Positions 39,642 through 45,772 of a DNA stretch of 64,000 nucleotides are shown one piece after another. The DNA lies in sequence record NC_023568.1; one strand, given 5' to 3'. Under the pieces are notes generated by a model that worked only from the letters and a program-made list of their open reading frames with translations, had not been told where the DNA came from and did not search any database. Every line of letters starts with the position of its first letter. The stretch's first letter is position 1. The translations under genes and the position numbers were made by a program.

Positions 39642-39649
39642 TCTAAATA
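39642..39649 (+). promoter_or_regulatory. Late promoter variant TCTAAATA
   Basis: Upstream of the 39680 ORF, back-to-back with the cca promoter. Confidence 0.65.
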
Positions 39650-39679
39650 TAAACGAATGATTAAATTTGGAGATTCACA

Positions 39680-40177
39680 ATGAGTCAATTGAAAAAACAC
39701 GCAGAGTCGTTAACTAAAGAAAAACTAGACGAGTTTGCAAAAGAATATTACGGCATCGAACTTGACCGTCGTAAATCAAAAGGCGCAATGGCTAAGAAGC
39801 TTGTAGAAGAAGCTGAAGGTAAAACGCCATTGAAACAACTACCATGGGAAGAACTTCTTGTAGAGACGAAAGATGAAACCAAAGAAATTAAAGAAATTTC
39901 TGAAGTGAAAACTGAAGTCGTTGATAAAGTAGAACTACCAATCGATGAATCATTTGAACCAATGCCATTGCCATTCCGTCGTGGTCGTGAATTTTTCATG
40001 ACTGCTTCTGATAGCGCGGTTACATCTGCGGAAGCTATTATCGCAGGGGATGGTTCGCTTGATGATGTACTTGCATCAGATCTTCGCGTAGTTAAATCAA
40101 TCTTGCATTATGTCGATAAAGACGGCAAGGTGCTAGTGCGTGAAACTCGCAATAGTCAATTCATCACAATTAAATAG
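39680..40177 (+). CDS. inh: Inh-like protein (prohead protease inhibitor family)
   Basis: DEFAKEYYGIELDRRKS N-terminus and HYVDKDGKVLVRETRNSQFITIK C-terminus, close to T4 Inh. Confidence 0.85.
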   Translation: MSQLKKHAESLTKEKLDEFAKEYYGIELDRRKSKGAMAKKLVEEAEGKTPLKQLPWEELLVETKDETKEIKEISEVKTEVVDKVELPIDESFEPMPLPFRRGREFFMTASDSAVTSAEAIIAGDGSLDDVLASDLRVVKSILHYVDKDGKVLVRETRNSQFITIK

Positions 40178-40185
40178 GAACTGAA

Positions 40186-40524
40186 ATGACAACACCAATC
40201 TATACTGATATGAACCTTGCAGTCGAACTTGATGATGCGACTGTAGCAGCGGCAGACGCTGCGAAAAGTGGGTATGATGATGTAACAACGTCTGTGCTTA
40301 ATCACTCAGGCGAATCTTACATTATCGTAGACAAGCAAACTTATGAAGAGCTTAAAGCTGCGATTGAAACTGCTAGTCCGTTGAGTTCAATTACTGGTCT
40401 TTCTCAAGAATGCGTTGACATTCTTGCAGGCGCGGTTGATTCAACAACTACACTTTGCAGAGAACATACCAATAGCCGATTCTTCCGAATCGCGTGGACT
40501 GTTACTACACCTGCTCCCGAATAA
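40186..40524 (+). CDS. Hypothetical late protein; possible Inh/Hoc C-terminal-domain relative
   Basis: RBS AGGA; LNHSGESYIIV and VDSTTTLCREHTNSRFFRI. Confidence 0.75.
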   Translation: MTTPIYTDMNLAVELDDATVAAADAAKSGYDDVTTSVLNHSGESYIIVDKQTYEELKAAIETASPLSSITGLSQECVDILAGAVDSTTTLCREHTNSRFFRIAWTVTTPAPE

Positions 40525-40554
40525 AAAAAAAGCCCGCACTTAGCGGGCTTTTTT
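40523..40554. terminator. Bidirectional terminator
   Basis: A9-GCCCGC-ACTTA-GCGGGC-T6 between convergent genes. Confidence 0.9.
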
Positions 40555-40582: not shown

Positions 40583-41767
40583 CTAAGCGACGAACGCTAC
40601 ACGCTGTACGATTGTCTGTTTTTCGTCGCGAAACTCTTCGTGCGCTTTTACAGTCGCTTTTACAGTTACTGAAACGCCTTTCTCAATCGCTTCGCCGTCG
40701 TTATCACGTAGACGCTTTGAACCAAACCACACGATTAGATTGTTTTGTTCATCGCGAAACTTGTGAATGAACGTGTCACCGTAGTAGCCTTCAGAAACGA
40801 TAACCGCTTCAAGAGTGACATTAAAGTTCTCGCGTTTTTTGATAGTACCGACGTACTCAGATTCTGGCAAATCTGCTTTACGTTCAGCTTCGCGTTTAGC
40901 TAGAATCTCGCGCTCTTTTGCTTTGTTGAAAGCTAAGATAGCCGCTGCAATGTAACCAGTTTGTTTGTACTCGATGAATGGTGCAGAACAAGACGCGATG
41001 ACGTTATGCATGAAATCGTTAGTCGCTTCTTGAGTTGCAACCCATTCTAAAATCTCTTTTGCTTGCTCTTCACAATTGTCGTAATCATATTCATCTAACA
41101 TTGCATCGCGTTCGGTACGAAGTGCAGGTGTACCTGCATTAATCATGTCAAGAACCCATTGACGAGTCACACCGCCACCGTGATAACAACCTTTGTGTTC
41201 AACATACATAGCAGCCCAAGCAAGAATCTGAAGCGCGTTATATGAAATTTTACGAGAACCACCACCCCAAGACTCTTCATCACCGAAATCAGCGATTGCA
41301 GTGTAGAACGTCGCTAGTGAGTCGATAGATTTAGTCGGCAAGTAGTATTTCAAGCATGAACCACCGACGCGCATTTCTTCTTTAGTCTCTTCATTCTGAA
41401 TGACGTAAGTTACATTGCGTTGACGATTAGAGTTACAGTGATCGCATGTTGTGTCGCCTAGAAGATGACGGTGATTTGTTTCGTTGTTTGAACGAATAAG
41501 ATTTGTCGCGTGGTCAAGTTGAGTCAAGAAAGACCAACCTTTAGTTGACGGGTATTCACCGCGAATAGTAACATCAACGTAGTATTCACGATGCTTTTGG
41601 TGATTGATAATAATGACTTTTGAGTACACTTCACCGAACTCAAATGTAATTTCAGCAACACCGAGACGTTTTGCAATCTTGTTAGTAGATGCAATACGCG
41701 CTTCAAACTCGCTCATGTAGATTGATTTGATTGTGTAAGTGTTTTCGAATTTGTTTAGTGAAGTCAT
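40583..41767 (-). CDS. Conserved hypothetical early protein (CDHC...C metal-binding motif, C-terminal OB-fold-like region)
   Basis: TCDHCNSNRQRNVTYVI..RVGGSCL; C-terminal YVGTIKKRENFNVTL..IVWF..VTVKATVKAHEEFRDEKQTIVQRV. Confidence 0.8.
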   Translation of the reverse strand: MTSLNKFENTYTIKSIYMSEFEARIASTNKIAKRLGVAEITFEFGEVYSKVIIINHQKHREYYVDVTIRGEYPSTKGWSFLTQLDHATNLIRSNNETNHRHLLGDTTCDHCNSNRQRNVTYVIQNEETKEEMRVGGSCLKYYLPTKSIDSLATFYTAIADFGDEESWGGGSRKISYNALQILAWAAMYVEHKGCYHGGGVTRQWVLDMINAGTPALRTERDAMLDEYDYDNCEEQAKEILEWVATQEATNDFMHNVIASCSAPFIEYKQTGYIAAAILAFNKAKEREILAKREAERKADLPESEYVGTIKKRENFNVTLEAVIVSEGYYGDTFIHKFRDEQNNLIVWFGSKRLRDNDGEAIEKGVSVTVKATVKAHEEFRDEKQTIVQRVAFVA

Positions 41768-41809
41768 AATGTTCTCTCTTGTAATGGACGATTCGTTTCG
41801 TTGATAGAG

Positions 41810-41838
41810 ATATTACGGCTTTTTGGTGTTGTCGTCAA
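41810..41838 (-). promoter_or_regulatory. Early sigma70-type promoter
   Basis: TTGACG-17 bp-TAATAT on -. Confidence 0.7.
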
Positions 41839-41932
41839 CCAATAGATACAAAAAAAGCGCAAAAATGCGCTTTTTAATTATCAAGCAGGTACGAAATCTG
41901 CTGAATTCATGAAAATCTTGAAATGTTTTCAT
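41813..41932 (-). pseudogene. CTS-bearing mini-ORF or remnant (MKTFQDFHE...)
   Basis: RBS AGAGAG then MKTFQDFHE. In frame it runs through the terminator; a +1 shift gives SADFVPA-stop-stop just before the terminator. Confidence 0.45.
41850..41875 (-). terminator. Terminator closing the late 43456-41932 operon
   Basis: A7-GCGCA-AAAA-TGCGC-T5. Confidence 0.8.
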
Positions 41933-41939
41933 TGCTCTC

Positions 41940-42860
41940 TTATTTTCTAATGAAATATGTTTTAGTCGAGACTTTCCCTTCGACCGTTTTATATGTGTAA
42001 TTCGGTAATGTATCAGCATATCGTTTTACTAAACGATTGTATAGTTTTATTCTCGAATCACTGTCGTTTTTTATATCTCGCTCTGCACTGAAATAAATTG
42101 TTTCTGGCTCTCGCTCGTCTATAAATTCACGCATACCGCTCATTACTGTCGCAAACACACCATACATATTGCCTCGACCTGTTGCGCTGTAAGTATAATC
42201 ACCCGAACTGTTCATACCTAAGAACACAAGTTCCCATGCATCGTTTTGTTCTTGATACTGTATTGCAATCGCGTATTCGTCCCCGTTTACCGTGAACGTA
42301 CCACCCCAACTGTGAATTCTCTTCTCAACCCAGTGTATTTTAGATGGTCGGTCAAATGCCTCAGTCAAGTTAACTGAAGATAACCATTCACGCCATGTCT
42401 TCTTATTACCGATCTTGGCAAATGGGATATCGTCATGATCTAGCCACTGAGCCGAGCGGTCATATGACTGAGAAGTATCAAACCCTCTATAATCATCACC
42501 AACCCACAACCATTTGTGATGCCATATTTGGTTTACTTGACGTGGTTTAGAAACAACACCGTCTCTGTAAGTAATCATCATACCCGCGGCTGGTTCTTGT
42601 ACAGTATCAAATTCAACTGAATCGTAGAAGGCAACTCCACCTTTCTTGTAGTCAATTCGTACTACATTCGGAGTAAATTGTGGGTTTGCAATTGATACTT
42701 GAGTACGAGCATCAGCAACCATTTGCTTGAACTCATCTGGGATATAGTCAATGTGAACATATAATGAACCGCCAATGTCTTTACCCACGCCCCACTTGCT
42801 GCGTTTTACTGCACTACCTTTTCGAGTTTTCAATGTAGCGCGTTCAAAAATTATGCTCAT
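41940..42860 (-). CDS. Hypothetical two-domain late protein, candidate internal head protein
   Basis: 306-aa ORF with RBS GAGG under late box 43479; internal LTE/AFD junction. Confidence 0.8.
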   Translation of the reverse strand: MSIIFERATLKTRKGSAVKRSKWGVGKDIGGSLYVHIDYIPDEFKQMVADARTQVSIANPQFTPNVVRIDYKKGGVAFYDSVEFDTVQEPAAGMMITYRDGVVSKPRQVNQIWHHKWLWVGDDYRGFDTSQSYDRSAQWLDHDDIPFAKIGNKKTWREWLSSVNLTEAFDRPSKIHWVEKRIHSWGGTFTVNGDEYAIAIQYQEQNDAWELVFLGMNSSGDYTYSATGRGNMYGVFATVMSGMREFIDEREPETIYFSAERDIKNDSDSRIKLYNRLVKRYADTLPNYTYKTVEGKVSTKTYFIRK

Positions 42861-42862
42861 TA

Positions 42863-43456
42863 TTACCTCGTTGCTGCGTTTGTAATATTGCGAATCATAC
42901 GAATTGCGTATTCAGTATCGCCAGTCATAGCCGATGACGCTGCTTTATCGACGTAAAATGTGCTATCTTCAATCATGTTCAAGTGATGGTAAATCTCACG
43001 AAAATCATGACGGTCGTATTCTTTCACATTAAAACGAAACGCACCTGCCTGCTTATCTTCGTCATGAACACGCTTGTATTCATCTACGACACGAATCATT
43101 TCGGTTGCGTATTTCTTCATTTCCATGTTATCAAGCTTTAAACGCTTTGCAGCTTTCATTACTTCGTCACGAGGACGTTCAAGCTCGATTACGTCTTTAA
43201 GAACATTCAGACTGTGAATTGTGTTCACTGCTGCACGCTCCATTCTTAGCTTATGGTCTTCTAGTGACTTATTGTGCTTTCTAAGTTCACCCGATGCTGT
43301 CGCACTCGCGATCAAACCTGCAAACACACCCCAGAAGCCACCTTTGCGCTGCATACGCTTTTTAACTTCACCTTTCGAACCCGATGTTGCTGCTTTAAAT
43401 TGAGCCCATCTACCGGTTTGTTTAGCTTTGTCCATTTCTGTTAAAAATTCTATCAT
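42863..43456 (-). CDS. Hypothetical late helical protein, candidate internal head protein
   Basis: Starts MIEFLTE; first gene after TCTAAATA (43479-43486, -). Confidence 0.8.
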   Translation of the reverse strand: MIEFLTEMDKAKQTGRWAQFKAATSGSKGEVKKRMQRKGGFWGVFAGLIASATASGELRKHNKSLEDHKLRMERAAVNTIHSLNVLKDVIELERPRDEVMKAAKRLKLDNMEMKKYATEMIRVVDEYKRVHDEDKQAGAFRFNVKEYDRHDFREIYHHLNMIEDSTFYVDKAASSAMTGDTEYAIRMIRNITNAATR

Positions 43457-43478
43457 TGTTAACCCCTTTGTTTACTAT

Positions 43479-43486
43479 TATTTAGA
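43479..43486 (-). promoter_or_regulatory. Late promoter variant TCTAAATA
   Basis: Between the terminator at 43495 and the 43456 ORF. Confidence 0.7.
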
Positions 43487-43494
43487 CGCAAACG

Positions 43495-43522
43495 AAAAAA
43501 GGGCGACCGAAGTCACCCTTTT
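43495..43522 (-). terminator. Terminator with UUCG loop
   Basis: On -: GGGTGAC-TTCG-GTCGCCC-T6. Confidence 0.88.
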
Positions 43523-43534
43523 AAATTGGTTAAT

Positions 43535-44161
43535 TTAACCGTATACTGATTTGATATTGTCGAAAAACGCAGTTGAACCGTGTAGTTTCGCTACAACATA
43601 CGATGCATTCTGACGAACAAGTTGTTTAACGTTCAGTTCTTTCAACTGCTCTTTTGACAAGTTCGCGCTATGTACAAGCGTAAGAATAGAACGTGCGTGA
43701 TCTGACAATGCAAGCGTTGAAATATAACGAGCTTGCTGTTTCGGTTCAAGTTTTTTAAATGCATCAACCGCTTGTGGACCCGCAACAGCTACTGCACGCC
43801 CCAGACCAAGATTGAGAACACGTGTCAATAGAGATTCCATCCCTAATACAGGCTTACGTGGCGACTCGCGTTTTGGCATGAGTACTTCTAATTTACCGTC
43901 ACCTTTCAACGTGTATACAGGAATCTCGGTGTGACCGAACGTTTCGAATCGAGTGACCATGATTTCAGGTGCATTCTGAACGTTAGCTTGAACACGACGA
44001 CGAAGACGCTCATCATATTCACCACCATTAAGTGAATATACAATCTCTGCAACTGTCAAGTCACGCTTTTCAAGCAATTGAATTACTGCTTTGCGGAAGT
44101 TACGACGCTTAGGTGACTCGTTAGTTGCAAGTGCTTTACGTACGATGTCTAAATCTTTCAT
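43535..44161 (-). CDS. Hypothetical early protein, possible N-terminal winged helix
   Basis: FRKAVIQLLEKRDLTVAEIVYSL...RRRVQANV..IPVYTL pattern. Confidence 0.7.
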   Translation of the reverse strand: MKDLDIVRKALATNESPKRRNFRKAVIQLLEKRDLTVAEIVYSLNGGEYDERLRRRVQANVQNAPEIMVTRFETFGHTEIPVYTLKGDGKLEVLMPKRESPRKPVLGMESLLTRVLNLGLGRAVAVAGPQAVDAFKKLEPKQQARYISTLALSDHARSILTLVHSANLSKEQLKELNVKQLVRQNASYVVAKLHGSTAFFDNIKSVYG

Positions 44162-44176
44162 AATATATTTCTCTCA

Positions 44177-44443
44177 TTAAATTACGATTGGCTCTTGAAT
44201 AGCCATGAATGTCTTGCCAGTGAATTCTTGATATGCTTCATGAAAGCTGTCAAGTTCATCGTCAACAATTATTTTTTCACCAGTATCAAATGAATATAAA
44301 ATACTGTCATATTTACCAGTTGCAGTATTAAACATCGGTTCAGTTGTGAATTTAACGCCACACGGTGTATAAAACTCTCTAGGTTTTTCAACAGGAACTT
44401 GTACAGCGTTATGTTCAGCAAAAGCTGTTTCGAGTTTGTTCAT
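44177..44443 (-). CDS. Hypothetical early protein
   Basis: 88-aa ORF with RBS GAGAG directly after the early promoter. Confidence 0.75.
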   Translation of the reverse strand: MNKLETAFAEHNAVQVPVEKPREFYTPCGVKFTTEPMFNTATGKYDSILYSFDTGEKIIVDDELDSFHEAYQEFTGKTFMAIQEPIVI

Positions 44444-44480
44444 ATTCTGCTCTCTTAGTTATGTTGTGTTAACGATGACT

Positions 44481-44509
44481 ATAATAAGCAAAAACATTTG
44501 AGTTGTCAA
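44481..44509 (-). promoter_or_regulatory. Early sigma70-type promoter
   Basis: TTGACA-17 bp-TATTAT on -, the same hexamers as the 8600-8628 promoter. Confidence 0.8.
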
Positions 44510-44998
44510 CTACTTTCTTCGCCATCTCTCAAGTTTTTCATCATATTCGCTATGCTTCCATAAGTCGAATACGATTGTACCTCTCTGAAACCACCAGACC
44601 AATGAAATAGTATCATTTAACTTAGGGTCTTTTGGGTTTTTCCCTGAATAAAATTCACTACTAGGGTGTGAGTGATAAATCGACTTTTTAACTGCGAACT
44701 TATACCCACCTTCAGGTTTACCGACTTCTTCTGGCGGGTATAAGTTACCTAGATACGCAACTTGATATACAGTGTTCTTGAATACGATTCGACTTGAATC
44801 AATATTGAAGAGCAAGTTCTGGTATTGAGCAGCATTCGCAGCAATCTTCCACGGGTGCTTCGGTTTCGTTTCTAGTAACTCATCGATTTTCGGCTCAGGG
44901 ATTAGTTTGGCTAGGTTATGATTACCCCACCCCTCTTCAAGTGATAAACTCAGTTCGATACCGTAAAGCGTGTTTTCATATTCATTAAATCGTAACAT
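44510..44998 (-). CDS. Hypothetical late protein; CTS-like start, possible RelE/HigB-like C-terminal domain
   Basis: MLRFNEY start, RBS GAGG, C-terminal IYHSH...ISLVWW..GTIVFDLWKHSEYDEK. Confidence 0.75.
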   Translation of the reverse strand: MLRFNEYENTLYGIELSLSLEEGWGNHNLAKLIPEPKIDELLETKPKHPWKIAANAAQYQNLLFNIDSSRIVFKNTVYQVAYLGNLYPPEEVGKPEGGYKFAVKKSIYHSHPSSEFYSGKNPKDPKLNDTISLVWWFQRGTIVFDLWKHSEYDEKLERWRRK

Positions 44999-45001
44999 AA
45001 A

Positions 45002-45514
45002 TTACCTCAGATAAATGAAGCTGTTCGAAAGACGGTCGTGAACTAAAAGATGACCATTTCGCTTAACCCAATATTCAATCGTCTTCAATTCGTGAGAGTC
45101 GCGTCGACCTATATTCCAATCATGAATCACATCATGCGCAACTGGCTGATATAGCTCATCACCACGGCGATAAGTAGGCATCCATTTAGGCTTGAATTCG
45201 TCCTTGATTACTAATGTTACGTTTTCATCACCTAAAGGGGCATTAGCAGAAACACCTTCTAATTCTTTCTTAACGTCGTCTGAAAGCTCTTTGACTACAA
45301 TCGCGTCCGATTCATCGACTGATTCACAGCGCGTCTCAGACTCGATTACAGAGCATTCTAGTGGTAGTTCTTTAACCTCGCGTAGCTCGTGTGTGAATAA
45401 CTCGTCGATCATCTTGCTTTTAGTCAGAGATTTATCAAGTTCGATGTCGTAGTACTCTTTTGCAAATTCTGCAACTACGCGCTTGGTTTGTTTCTTTAGA
45501 TATTCTTTAATCAT
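45002..45514 (-). CDS. inh: Second Inh-like protein, at the T4 inh position next to uvsW
   Basis: AEFAKEYYDIELDKSLTKSKMIDEL and YWVKRNGHLLVHDRLSNSFIYLR; paralogue of 39680-40177. Confidence 0.75.
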   Translation of the reverse strand: MIKEYLKKQTKRVVAEFAKEYYDIELDKSLTKSKMIDELFTHELREVKELPLECSVIESETRCESVDESDAIVVKELSDDVKKELEGVSANAPLGDENVTLVIKDEFKPKWMPTYRRGDELYQPVAHDVIHDWNIGRRDSHELKTIEYWVKRNGHLLVHDRLSNSFIYLR

Positions 45515-45523
45515 AGTTTTACC

Positions 45524-45733
45524 TTAGCATTCAATTGTTACCCACACATTTCGATTTAAATCGAAAAATGTAAGTTCATTATCTGCACCGTTTTCATTTT
45601 TACGTTGTTCTTCTCGATTGCAATCAAGATGTGGTAGATAATGCTTGCATAAAGTCGCGTGATATTTCTTGCCTTTATGCTCAAACTTAAAGCAACCATC
45701 TTTCATCTTGTAAAACATTTCGTCTCTTGTCAT
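45524..45733 (-). CDS. Small hypothetical protein (possible WYL_2/DUF2693-like SH3 fold)
   Basis: KFEHKGKKYHATL..LP..LTFFDLNRNVWVTI; first gene after late box 45765. Confidence 0.65.
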   Translation of the reverse strand: MTRDEMFYKMKDGCFKFEHKGKKYHATLCKHYLPHLDCNREEQRKNENGADNELTFFDLNRNVWVTIEC

Positions 45734-45746
45734 GAATTTAGACCTC

Positions 45747-45772
45747 TATAAATACAGTTATACATATTTAGA
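45747..45772. promoter_or_regulatory. Overlapping-divergent late promoters (TATAAATA + for uvsW; TCTAAATA - for the inh operon)
   Basis: Boxes at 45747-45754 (+) and 45765-45772 (-). Confidence 0.75.

Follow-up and report, generated by a model that had tools for sequence, protein, structure and literature searches.

Three late-type genes between inh and uvsW of Vibrio phage VH7D encode candidate capsid cargo proteins with targeting-like leaders

The closest described counterparts of the proteins reported here are the internal proteins IPI, IPII and IPIII of bacteriophage T4 and its packaged ADP-ribosyltransferase, Alt. The T4 internal proteins carry N-terminal propeptides of 10–19 residues (capsid-targeting sequences), which attach to the core and which gp21 cuts off behind the glutamate of a Leu/Ile-x-Glu motif, and T4 Alt likewise loses an N-terminal propeptide to gp21 (PMC9026906). 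Here we analyse a window of 64,000 nucleotides (nt), by which we mean the whole stretch of DNA under study; its sequence shows 100% identity to that of Vibrio phage VH7D (KC131129 / NC_023568), a KVP40-like Schizotequatrovirus, and comprises bases 124001–188000 of that record, so that window coordinates equal record coordinates minus 124000. The subject is a minus-strand block that includes three genes, A, B and C, whose products begin MLRFNEY, MIEFLTE and MSIIFE, respectively.

The block contains nine genes on the minus strand and is flanked by inh and uvsW, both on the plus strand (Table 1). In the direction of transcription it consists, by predicted timing, of a late unit (a 69-amino-acid (aa) open reading frame (ORF), a paralogue of Inh, and A), an early unit (ORFs of 88 and 208 aa) closed by a terminator, a second late unit (B and C) closed by another terminator, and an early unit with a 394-aa ORF. 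Because hoc, inh and uvsW are neighbours on the T4 map, the block represents an insertion into the head-accessory region relative to T4. The three late-type genes A, B and C encode proteins whose orthologues are detected in phage particles and whose leaders resemble those of the Alt-like and core proteins. The reading that we favour, at somewhat better than even confidence, is that A, B and C are late-made cargo packaged in the capsid by means of targeting-like leaders; we infer that they are made late, directed to the interior of the head, cleaved after a glutamate and released into the host together with the DNA.

The likeness to IPI, IPII and IPIII lies in the predicted late genes, in a prohead protease of the same family, in a short putative leader ending in Leu/Ile-x-Glu, in the presence of the orthologues in particles, and in the diverse, unrelated mature parts that follow a similar leader; IPIII is, like B, a basic protein of about 200 aa. 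There are also differences: no sequence or fold relation is detectable, the leaders of B and C span 6–7 residues as against 10–19 in T4, both A and B belong to the conserved core of the genome and do not form a hyperplastic locus, and it is on the T4 side that ejection and cleavage are known. The T4 proteins are moreover present at hundreds of copies per head, whereas the particle counts given below suggest far fewer. With Alt, the three share a style of leader: the Alt-like protein of VH7D and KVP40, encoded behind a CATAAATA box, starts MIGFQQL(N/T)E, the Alt-like proteins of these two phages and of 6E35.1a all having Met-Ile-Gly-Phe-Gln with Leu-(Asn/Thr)-Glu at residues 7–9, and beyond this style A, B and C show no homology to Alt. 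T4 Inh is matched by the 170-aa paralogue in the block, to which A, B and C are not related. The class as such, capsid-targeted cargo of T4-type phages, is thus known; new here would be the style of the leader and the unrelated mature domains.

Evidence for presence in the particle comes from a study of Schizotequatrovirus published in 2025, in which particles of phage 6E35.1a were analysed by mass spectrometry (PMC12028318, Tables S4 and S8). The syntenic block of 6E35.1a runs from VP6E351A_0015 to VP6E351A_0025, and its PHROG assignments agree with those of VH7D. The published table, which gives counts without peptide-level data, lists the orthologue of A (VP6E351A_0022) with 17 and 14 spectral counts in the two replicates, that of B (VP6E351A_0019) with 21 and 34, and that of C (VP6E351A_0018) with 9 and 14; the values recorded for the prohead protease were 17 and 28, and those for the Alt-like protein 122 and 233 (PMC12028318). 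Within the minus-strand block the orthologues of A, B and C alone were detected and the other six genes were not; neither the orthologues of the 69-, 88-, 208- and 394-aa ORFs nor either of the two Inh proteins were found in the 6E35.1a particles (PMC12028318). Presence in the mature particle is accordingly seen for all three orthologues in both replicates, in another phage and in a crude preparation. Normalized to mass, the counts per kDa are about 1.2 for B, 0.8 for A and 0.3 for C, as compared with 2.8 for the Alt-like protein and 3.7 for the portal. A literature search found no further virion proteome for the KVP40 group.

The leaders are conserved at the protein level. In B, the heptapeptide MIEF(L/I)TE is invariant in all full-length homologues aligned, including that of the distant phage D479 at 37% overall identity, and the 20 residues that follow it vary among homologues. 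Among the leader residues of A, F4, E8 and E22 do not vary and E6 and N9 hardly do; AlphaFold predicts residues 1–20 to be disordered (predicted local distance difference test (pLDDT) 35), the folded part setting in at about residue 25, and a Leu-Glu-Glu at residues 20–22, ending at the invariant E22, closes the disordered leader. A leader that is conserved yet predicted to be unstructured is what would be expected of a linear signal. C has Ile-Phe-Glu at residues 4–6, with E6 retained in at least 90% of 25 homologues. Similar starts are found in other proteins of the head interior, namely the gp68-like core protein (MKFISE), the scaffold (MQIKE) and the protease (Leu-Ile-Glu at residues 6–8).

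The association between such starts and particles was evaluated across 250 kb of 6E35.1a, in which 436 genes were called. A start pattern of Met, one to three residues, Phe, zero to two residues and Glu has 23 carriers, counting the orthologue of A, whose start the gene caller had misplaced. Eleven of the 23 carriers were detected in particles, compared with 83 of the 419 other genes (odds ratio 3.7, one-sided Fisher P=0.003), although P values here are optimistic because this pattern and the one described next were picked after inspection of the data. Besides A, B and C, the 11 detected carriers comprise the Alt-like protein, the gp68-like core protein and six hypothetical proteins. Among the 6E35.1a genes annotated as tail, baseplate, neck or fibre genes, none carries the pattern, so it is not merely a mark of strong late expression. 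Furthermore, the tetrapeptide Phe-(Asn/Ser/Gln)-Glu-(Phe/Tyr/Leu) occurs ten times in the 78,496 residues of the called proteome, and five of these occurrences lie at residues 3–8 of particle-detected proteins, again including the orthologue of A with its misplaced start. Three more 6E35.1a proteins, of 84, 197 and 288 aa, have Phe-(Asn/Ser)-Glu-(Phe/Tyr) at residues 3–8 and were all detected in particles; they are candidates for the same class of cargo.

These results allow the sequence-only reading of this stretch, made before the present analysis, to be assessed. It had singled out four N-termini, those of A, B and C and a fourth, MKTFQDFHE, all of which are present on the minus strand at the positions given, and had regarded them as capsid-targeting-like starts of packaged proteins. 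The conserved leaders and the starts of the Alt-like type agree with the resemblance, which is weakened by the lack of similarity to T4 internal proteins and by how common Leu/Ile-x-Glu is. Packaging finds support for A, B and C through their orthologues in 6E35.1a particles, from a crude preparation; it has to be given up for the fourth ORF, which is not a gene.

The predicted timing of A, B and C rests on promoter sequences, which were compared with those of KVP40, 6E35.1a, F86, 1.081.O and nt-1 and with the more distant D479. The same reading had placed late boxes at 43479 and 45765 upstream of the flagged ORFs. Both are over-represented, conserved elements, of the variant form TCTAAATA, a T4 late box with one mismatch, and not the canonical TATAAATA, of which no exact copy occurs on the minus strand of the whole window. 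TCTAAATA is found 10 times in the window against 2.7 expected, a number that 0 of 100 shuffles reached, and at least 7 of the 10 copies lie 15–40 nt before a long ORF with a ribosome-binding site; the ORFs behind these boxes include inh, a tail-tube-sized ORF and a 1235-aa fibre-sized ORF. In Aeromonas phage Aeh1, which is T4-like, a late box of the CTAAATA type has been described, and for KVP40 the first position of the box is reported to vary (PMC1524935). As to which genes the boxes serve, MIEFLTE (B) is indeed the first gene behind its box, MSIIFE (C) is the second, and MLRFNEY (A) is the third, after the 69-aa ORF and the Inh paralogue.

The positions of both TCTAAATA boxes of the block are kept in five or six diverged relatives, and D479 carries CATAAATA where VH7D has the box of gene B at 43479. 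More generally, boxes, terminators and sigma-70-like promoters are kept across KVP40, 6E35.1a, F86, 1.081.O and nt-1, while the neighbouring bases drift. Two late transcription units would thus alternate with two early ones in the block, the timing being predicted from promoter sequence; the interleaving with early genes that had been proposed is borne out by conserved early-type promoters and terminators alternating with late-type promoters. Late transcription together with the head genes, as is characteristic of T4-type internal proteins, is accordingly what the conserved boxes, terminators and early-type promoters predict. In VH7D, TCTAAATA is apparently no rarer as a late box than the canonical TATAAATA (10 versus 7 copies). 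The layout of back-to-back late boxes at 45747–45772 (plus-strand TATAAATA and minus-strand TCTAAATA) is kept in four relatives.

Under the favoured reading of packaged cargo, the two late units would yield the lineage-specific proteins A, B and C alongside the head genes, and the products would join the particle. Each leader would consist of Met, one to three residues, Phe and an acidic residue, with Leu/Ile-x-Glu within the first 7–22 residues, and would act as a propeptide of the T4 type that binds the scaffolding core and takes the cargo with it into the prohead, until the prohead protease removes it by cleavage behind Glu. C would be modular, with a conserved N-terminal domain (N-domain), a second Leu-(Ser/Thr)-Glu junction and an exchangeable C-terminal domain (C-domain) of GNAT fold (DUF6934-like). 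The cargo would then enter the host cell together with the DNA.

A number of observations weigh against this reading. The proteomic data come from a different phage, the orthologues being 73% (A), 69% (B) and about 51% (C) identical, and its particles were precipitated with polyethylene glycol (PEG) and not gradient-purified (PMC12028318). Non-structural proteins appear at like counts, among them nicotinamide phosphoribosyltransferase (16 and 23), dUTPase (7 and 10), GTP cyclohydrolase (13 and 7) and the spanins (12 and 10, and 8 and 6) (PMC12028318). The listed contaminants reach 0.3–0.7 counts per kDa, a range within which C falls and which A slightly exceeds, and the counts are far under those expected for proteins with hundreds of copies per head. 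Because the per-kDa counts are near those of contaminants, A, B and C are low-copy particle components at best, and C is inseparable from background by abundance alone. With regard to the leaders, 18% of all called genes have Leu/Ile-x-Glu somewhere in their first nine residues, so that the motif by itself is poor proof; the first Glu of A is preceded by Phe-x and not by Leu/Ile-x; the leaders of B and C are shorter than those of T4, as noted above; and the start patterns were defined post hoc and may partly mirror A/T-rich early codons in highly expressed genes. No T4 internal-protein family was returned for A, B or C by PHROGs, Pfam, PDB profiles or tblastn, and a literature search turned up no transcriptome for the KVP40 group. 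Finally, A and B are conserved core genes with a low ratio of non-synonymous to synonymous substitution rates (dN/dS) in the table of PMC12028318, unlike typical arms-race genes.

Several of these points would fit an alternative under which the three products would be non-packaged proteins made late and in abundance (chaperones, degraded scaffold accessories or lysis-phase proteins) that co-precipitated with the particles, their N-termini reflecting a codon or translation preference. The crude PEG preparation contains clear non-structural proteins at 5–25 counts, with the per-kDa count of C in their range; Leu/Ile-x-Glu near the start is as frequent as stated above; and the codons for Lys, Phe, Asn, Ile and Glu are, by our inference, A/T-rich. 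We nevertheless regard this explanation as improbable, since the start pattern occurs in none of about 35 highly expressed tail, baseplate and fibre genes, the heptapeptide of B is invariant as protein sequence down to 37% identity, the Leu-x-Glu / Ala-Phe-Asp-Arg-Pro junction described below recurs at the starts of domains, the same kind of start is common to the Alt-like protein, whose T4 counterpart is packaged, and both Inh proteins and the 69-aa product of the same late units were not detected. To the possibility that the three proteins are minor structural parts outside the DNA-filled head (in the neck, tail or baseplate or on the capsid surface), with no role in the host, we give still less weight. 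Their counts are like those of neck and baseplate proteins present at 6–12 copies, a homologue of the N-domain of C lies directly behind a tail sheath gene in a metagenomic myovirus contig, and some neighbouring particle-detected proteins of unassigned role are filed under tail morphogenesis (PMC12028318). Set against this, inh and uvsW enclose the genes within the head-accessory region, where Inh paralogues accompany them, and in D479 they come directly behind the major head gene; the leaders are like those of the Alt-like and core proteins and unlike those of tail proteins; and the enzyme-like GNAT-fold domain of C is swapped or lost among close relatives, which would be odd for a fixed part.

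Packaging of A, B and C as capsid cargo is to be distinguished from the more specific proposal that all three enter the cell with the DNA and there, like T4 IPI*, counter host defence systems or serve host takeover. All the support for packaging applies here as well, and the C-domain of C behaves as a rapidly exchanged cassette with paralogues, as is typical of conflict genes; furthermore, the C orthologue is hand-tagged 'Defense?' in PMC12028318, with no recorded match to a defence or anti-defence model. PADLOC, Pfam and NCBIfam, however, gave no defence or counter-defence match, the fold searches yielded no more than a generic GNAT fold in C and a weak likeness of A to RelE, and in the genus both A and B belong to the conserved core, with low dN/dS. 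We therefore consider the proposal doubtful, and an anti-defence function of A, B and C is a guess. Broader still would be a modular system of capsid delivery in KVP40-like vibriophages, in which a leader, or the N-domain of C, followed by a Leu-x-Glu junction would carry exchangeable GNAT-fold payloads, Inh-like proteins would serve as escorts or timers, the injected enzymes would modify the host, and payload turnover would reflect conflict with Vibrio defences; as a whole, we think this scheme unlikely.

A, B and C matched no named structural family in Pfam, PHROGs, NCBIfam, PADLOC or PDB sequence searches, in agreement with what the sequence-only reading had stated about their lack of likeness to known structural proteins. 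PADLOC and NCBIfam returned no matches of any kind for the three, and no significant match came from the PDB, whether it was searched with single proteins or with profiles. Structure prediction, which that reading had proposed as a check, was run for A and C and resulted in a weak RelE-like resemblance for A and a generic GNAT fold for the C-domain of C.

A profile search of 1.84 billion representative proteins gave just three true clusters for A, which is thus an orphan. No fold match of A reached an E-value of 1e-3 in Foldseek; the best PDB matches, both weak, were the RelE-like domain of Cami1 (E=0.035) and the Helicobacter pylori toxin 4ltt, which we take to be a RelE-type toxin (E=0.059, template modelling (TM) score normalized to the target 0.60). 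The resemblance of the predicted structure of A to RelE-type ribonucleases is thus a lead only. In a viral structure library the sole return was the orthologue of A itself. The UniRef entry of the nt-1 orthologue (P0028) bears the label 'JAB domain-containing protein', which is unsupported by Pfam or fold search. An identity of A as a JAB/MPN metallopeptidase was rejected: 0 of 13 orthologues matched such Pfam families up to an E-value of 10, and Foldseek gave no JAB fold. The second His of the conserved His-Ser-His of A is replaced by Lys in D479.

For B, no relatives were found outside the KVP40-like phage group. Two candidate identities were rejected. As a holin or membrane protein B is insufficiently hydrophobic, no transmembrane segment being found, with a maximum 19-residue hydropathy of 1.09 (residues 40–58) and a still less hydrophobic stretch in D479; as a relative of T4 internal proteins it returned no named match even at lenient PHROGs thresholds and in tblastn.

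C is predicted to consist of two domains. The N-domain (residues 1–160) is modelled with pLDDT above 90, and its fold matched nothing; its family also occurs as stand-alone proteins of about 170–190 aa in other large phages. One of these stand-alone relatives adjoins a tail sheath gene and another lies on a contig with a multisubunit RNA polymerase gene. In a further protein (P0024), the N-domain stands behind an N-terminal extension that resembles, as judged by eye, a nucleotidyltransferase domain. The C-domain is modelled with a beta-alpha topology of the GNAT type, and Foldseek aligned its model to RimL and SpeG with a probability of 0.99–1.00 over about 131–137 columns (E-values 3.5e-3 to 1e-2; TM-scores normalized to the target about 0.35–0.45). 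At the sequence level it matches phrog_6387 (E=2.4e-20) and, below the Pfam cut-off of 27 bits, DUF6934 (PF22028; E=3.7e-5, 24.2 bits), a family matched by 7 of 26 relatives with a best E-value of 2.5e-10; it matches no GNAT family of Pfam. In its modelled topology the domain resembles RimL and SpeG, although with weak E-values and TM-scores and no GNAT Pfam match, and its likeness to DUF6934 stays below threshold; acyl transfer is our best guess for its activity.

Domains of the same type are found in VP6E351A_0094, VP6E351A_0154 and VP6E351A_0242, which have leader-style starts and mean particle counts of 38.5, 44 and 19, respectively, so that all four DUF6934-like proteins of 6E35.1a were detected in particles. 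In two of these three stand-alone paralogues, as in C of VH7D and nt-1, the domain follows a [LI]-x-Glu / Ala-Phe-(Asp/Ser)-(Arg/Lys)-Pro junction; the leader before the junction measures 5–12 residues in the two paralogues, and in C the whole N-domain takes this place, the junction reading Asn-Leu-Thr-Glu. Between VH7D and KVP40, C is a mosaic: identity amounts to 97% over the N-domain and 30% over the C-domain, with the break exactly at the conserved Leu-(Ser/Thr)-Glu junction. The corresponding values for VH7D and nt-1 are 92% and 77%, and the C-domain is missing from C of 1.081.O and D479. If the leaders do serve as capsid-targeting signals, the mosaic would offer a clean case of domain-level exchange in a virion protein, between two phages with genomes about 80% identical.

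Links to the head are also seen in the arrangement of Inh-like genes. The Inh paralogue of the block (Inh2) is named prohead protease inhibitor in ValKK3 and KVP40. Its pairing with A is kept in all relatives compared, including D479, in which A and an Inh paralogue adjoin uvsW. The D479 counterparts of B and of the N-domain of C come immediately 3' of the major head gene and share its strand, with a third Inh paralogue (Inh3) ahead of them. An Inh-like gene thus immediately precedes a gene for a particle protein three times, as inh with the 112-aa ORF, as Inh2 with A, and as Inh3 with B and C of D479. Across the phages compared, inh is duplicated in all and triplicated in D479. That Inh paralogues act as timers or escorts of the cargo is speculation.

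The fourth start, MKTFQDFHE, had been taken for that of another late gene. The 39-aa ORF that it opens lies across and downstream of the terminator that ends the B–C unit (41852–41875) and overlaps the early promoter at 41810–41838. It has no counterpart in KVP40 (80% DNA identity), 6E35.1a, F86, 1.081.O or nt-1 and is without annotation in ValKK3. Because of its position atop a terminator and a promoter and its lack of a counterpart in relatives, the ORF was rejected as a gene.

If the leaders do target the capsid, a second T4-like genus would have a packaging code of its own, with a set of cargo proteins, seven or eight at the least, that bear no relation to those inside the T4 head, and a sequence rule would become available for finding packaged, and possibly injected, proteins in marine T4-like phages; a role would also be assigned to a block that is wholly unannotated in the VH7D record. 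Should the leaders have no such role, the description of the region has nonetheless improved, with late and early units and one spurious ORF recognized.

Table 1. Genes, transcription signals and related loci; coordinates are those of the window unless a comparison sequence (L number) is given.
Feature	Position	Strand	Remarks
uvsW (annotated start)	45798	+	flanks the block
Late-type box TCTAAATA, 31 nt before 69-aa ORF	45765–45772	-	kept in KVP40, 6E35.1a, F86, 1.081.O
Canonical TATAAATA box upstream of uvsW	45747–45754	+	pairs divergently with box 45765–45772
69-aa ORF	45524–45733	-	heads its late unit; phrog_18485; orthologue not detected in 6E35.1a particles
Inh paralogue, 170 aa	45002–45514	-	ends 3 nt before start of gene A; phrog_8608, E=8e-69, full length
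Gene A, 162 aa (MLRFNEY)	44510–44998	-	orphan family; small alpha/beta domain after leader
Gene A leader, residues 1–22	44933–44998	-	
Sigma-70-like promoter TTGACA-17-TATTAT before 88-aa ORF	44481–44509	-	11/12 matches; kept in 6E35.1a, F86, nt-1
88-aa ORF	44177–44443	-	predicted early; orthologue not detected in particles
208-aa ORF	43535–44161	-	basic; predicted early; no copy in nt-1, 1.081.O; orthologue not detected in particles
Intrinsic terminator ending 88/208-aa early unit	43497–43522	-	hairpin kept in six relatives
Late-type box TCTAAATA, 22 nt before gene B	43479–43486	-	kept in 6/6 Schizotequatrovirus-type relatives
Gene B, 197 aa (MIEFLTE)	42863–43456	-	isoelectric point 9.5
Gene B, first seven residues	43436–43456	-	
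Gene C, 306 aa (MSIIFE)	41940–42860	-	begins 2 nt past stop of B
Gene C N-domain, residues 1–160	42381–42860	-	
Gene C C-domain, residues 161–306	41943–42380	-	
Mosaic gene C	41943–42860		counterpart L002 4463–5425
MKTFQDFHE ORF, 39 aa	41813–41932	-	within listed ORF 41813–42019; judged non-gene
Intrinsic terminator ending B–C late unit	41852–41875	-	
Sigma-70-like promoter TTGACG-17-TAATAT before 394-aa ORF	41810–41838	-	kept in relatives
394-aa ORF	40583–41767	-	phrog_2319; predicted early; orthologue not detected in particles
Terminator after 394-aa ORF	40526–40554	-	
Neighbouring late unit	39642–40524	+	TCTAAATA 39642–39649, inh 39680–40177, 112-aa ORF 40186–40524
TCTAAATA copies, plus strand	2232, 27412, 32513, 34446, 35500, 36629, 39642	+	
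TCTAAATA copies, minus strand	43479, 45765, 55259	-	
inh copies	39680–40177, 45002–45514		also L005 5213–5842; L006 5592–5999, 7795–8325
Stand-alone relatives of C N-domain	L011 2811–3353; L012 8001–8579		
84-, 197- and 288-aa proteins of 6E35.1a	L015 10254–10508, 20004–20597, 31332–32198	-	

The plus-strand 112-aa ORF next to the block is acidic and co-transcribed with inh, and the counts of its 6E35.1a orthologue, VP6E351A_0016 (24 and 40), exceed those of A, B and C; the orthologue is filed as tail morphogenesis (PMC12028318). In the VH7D RefSeq/GenBank record all nine genes of the block (40583–45733, minus strand) are unannotated, as is the gene of the Alt-like protein (L020 1501–3130). 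Near-identical phages such as ValKK3 and Va3 do annotate the block genes and the Alt-like gene, and ValKK3 and KVP40 name the block genes hypothetical, with the single exception of the prohead protease inhibitor.

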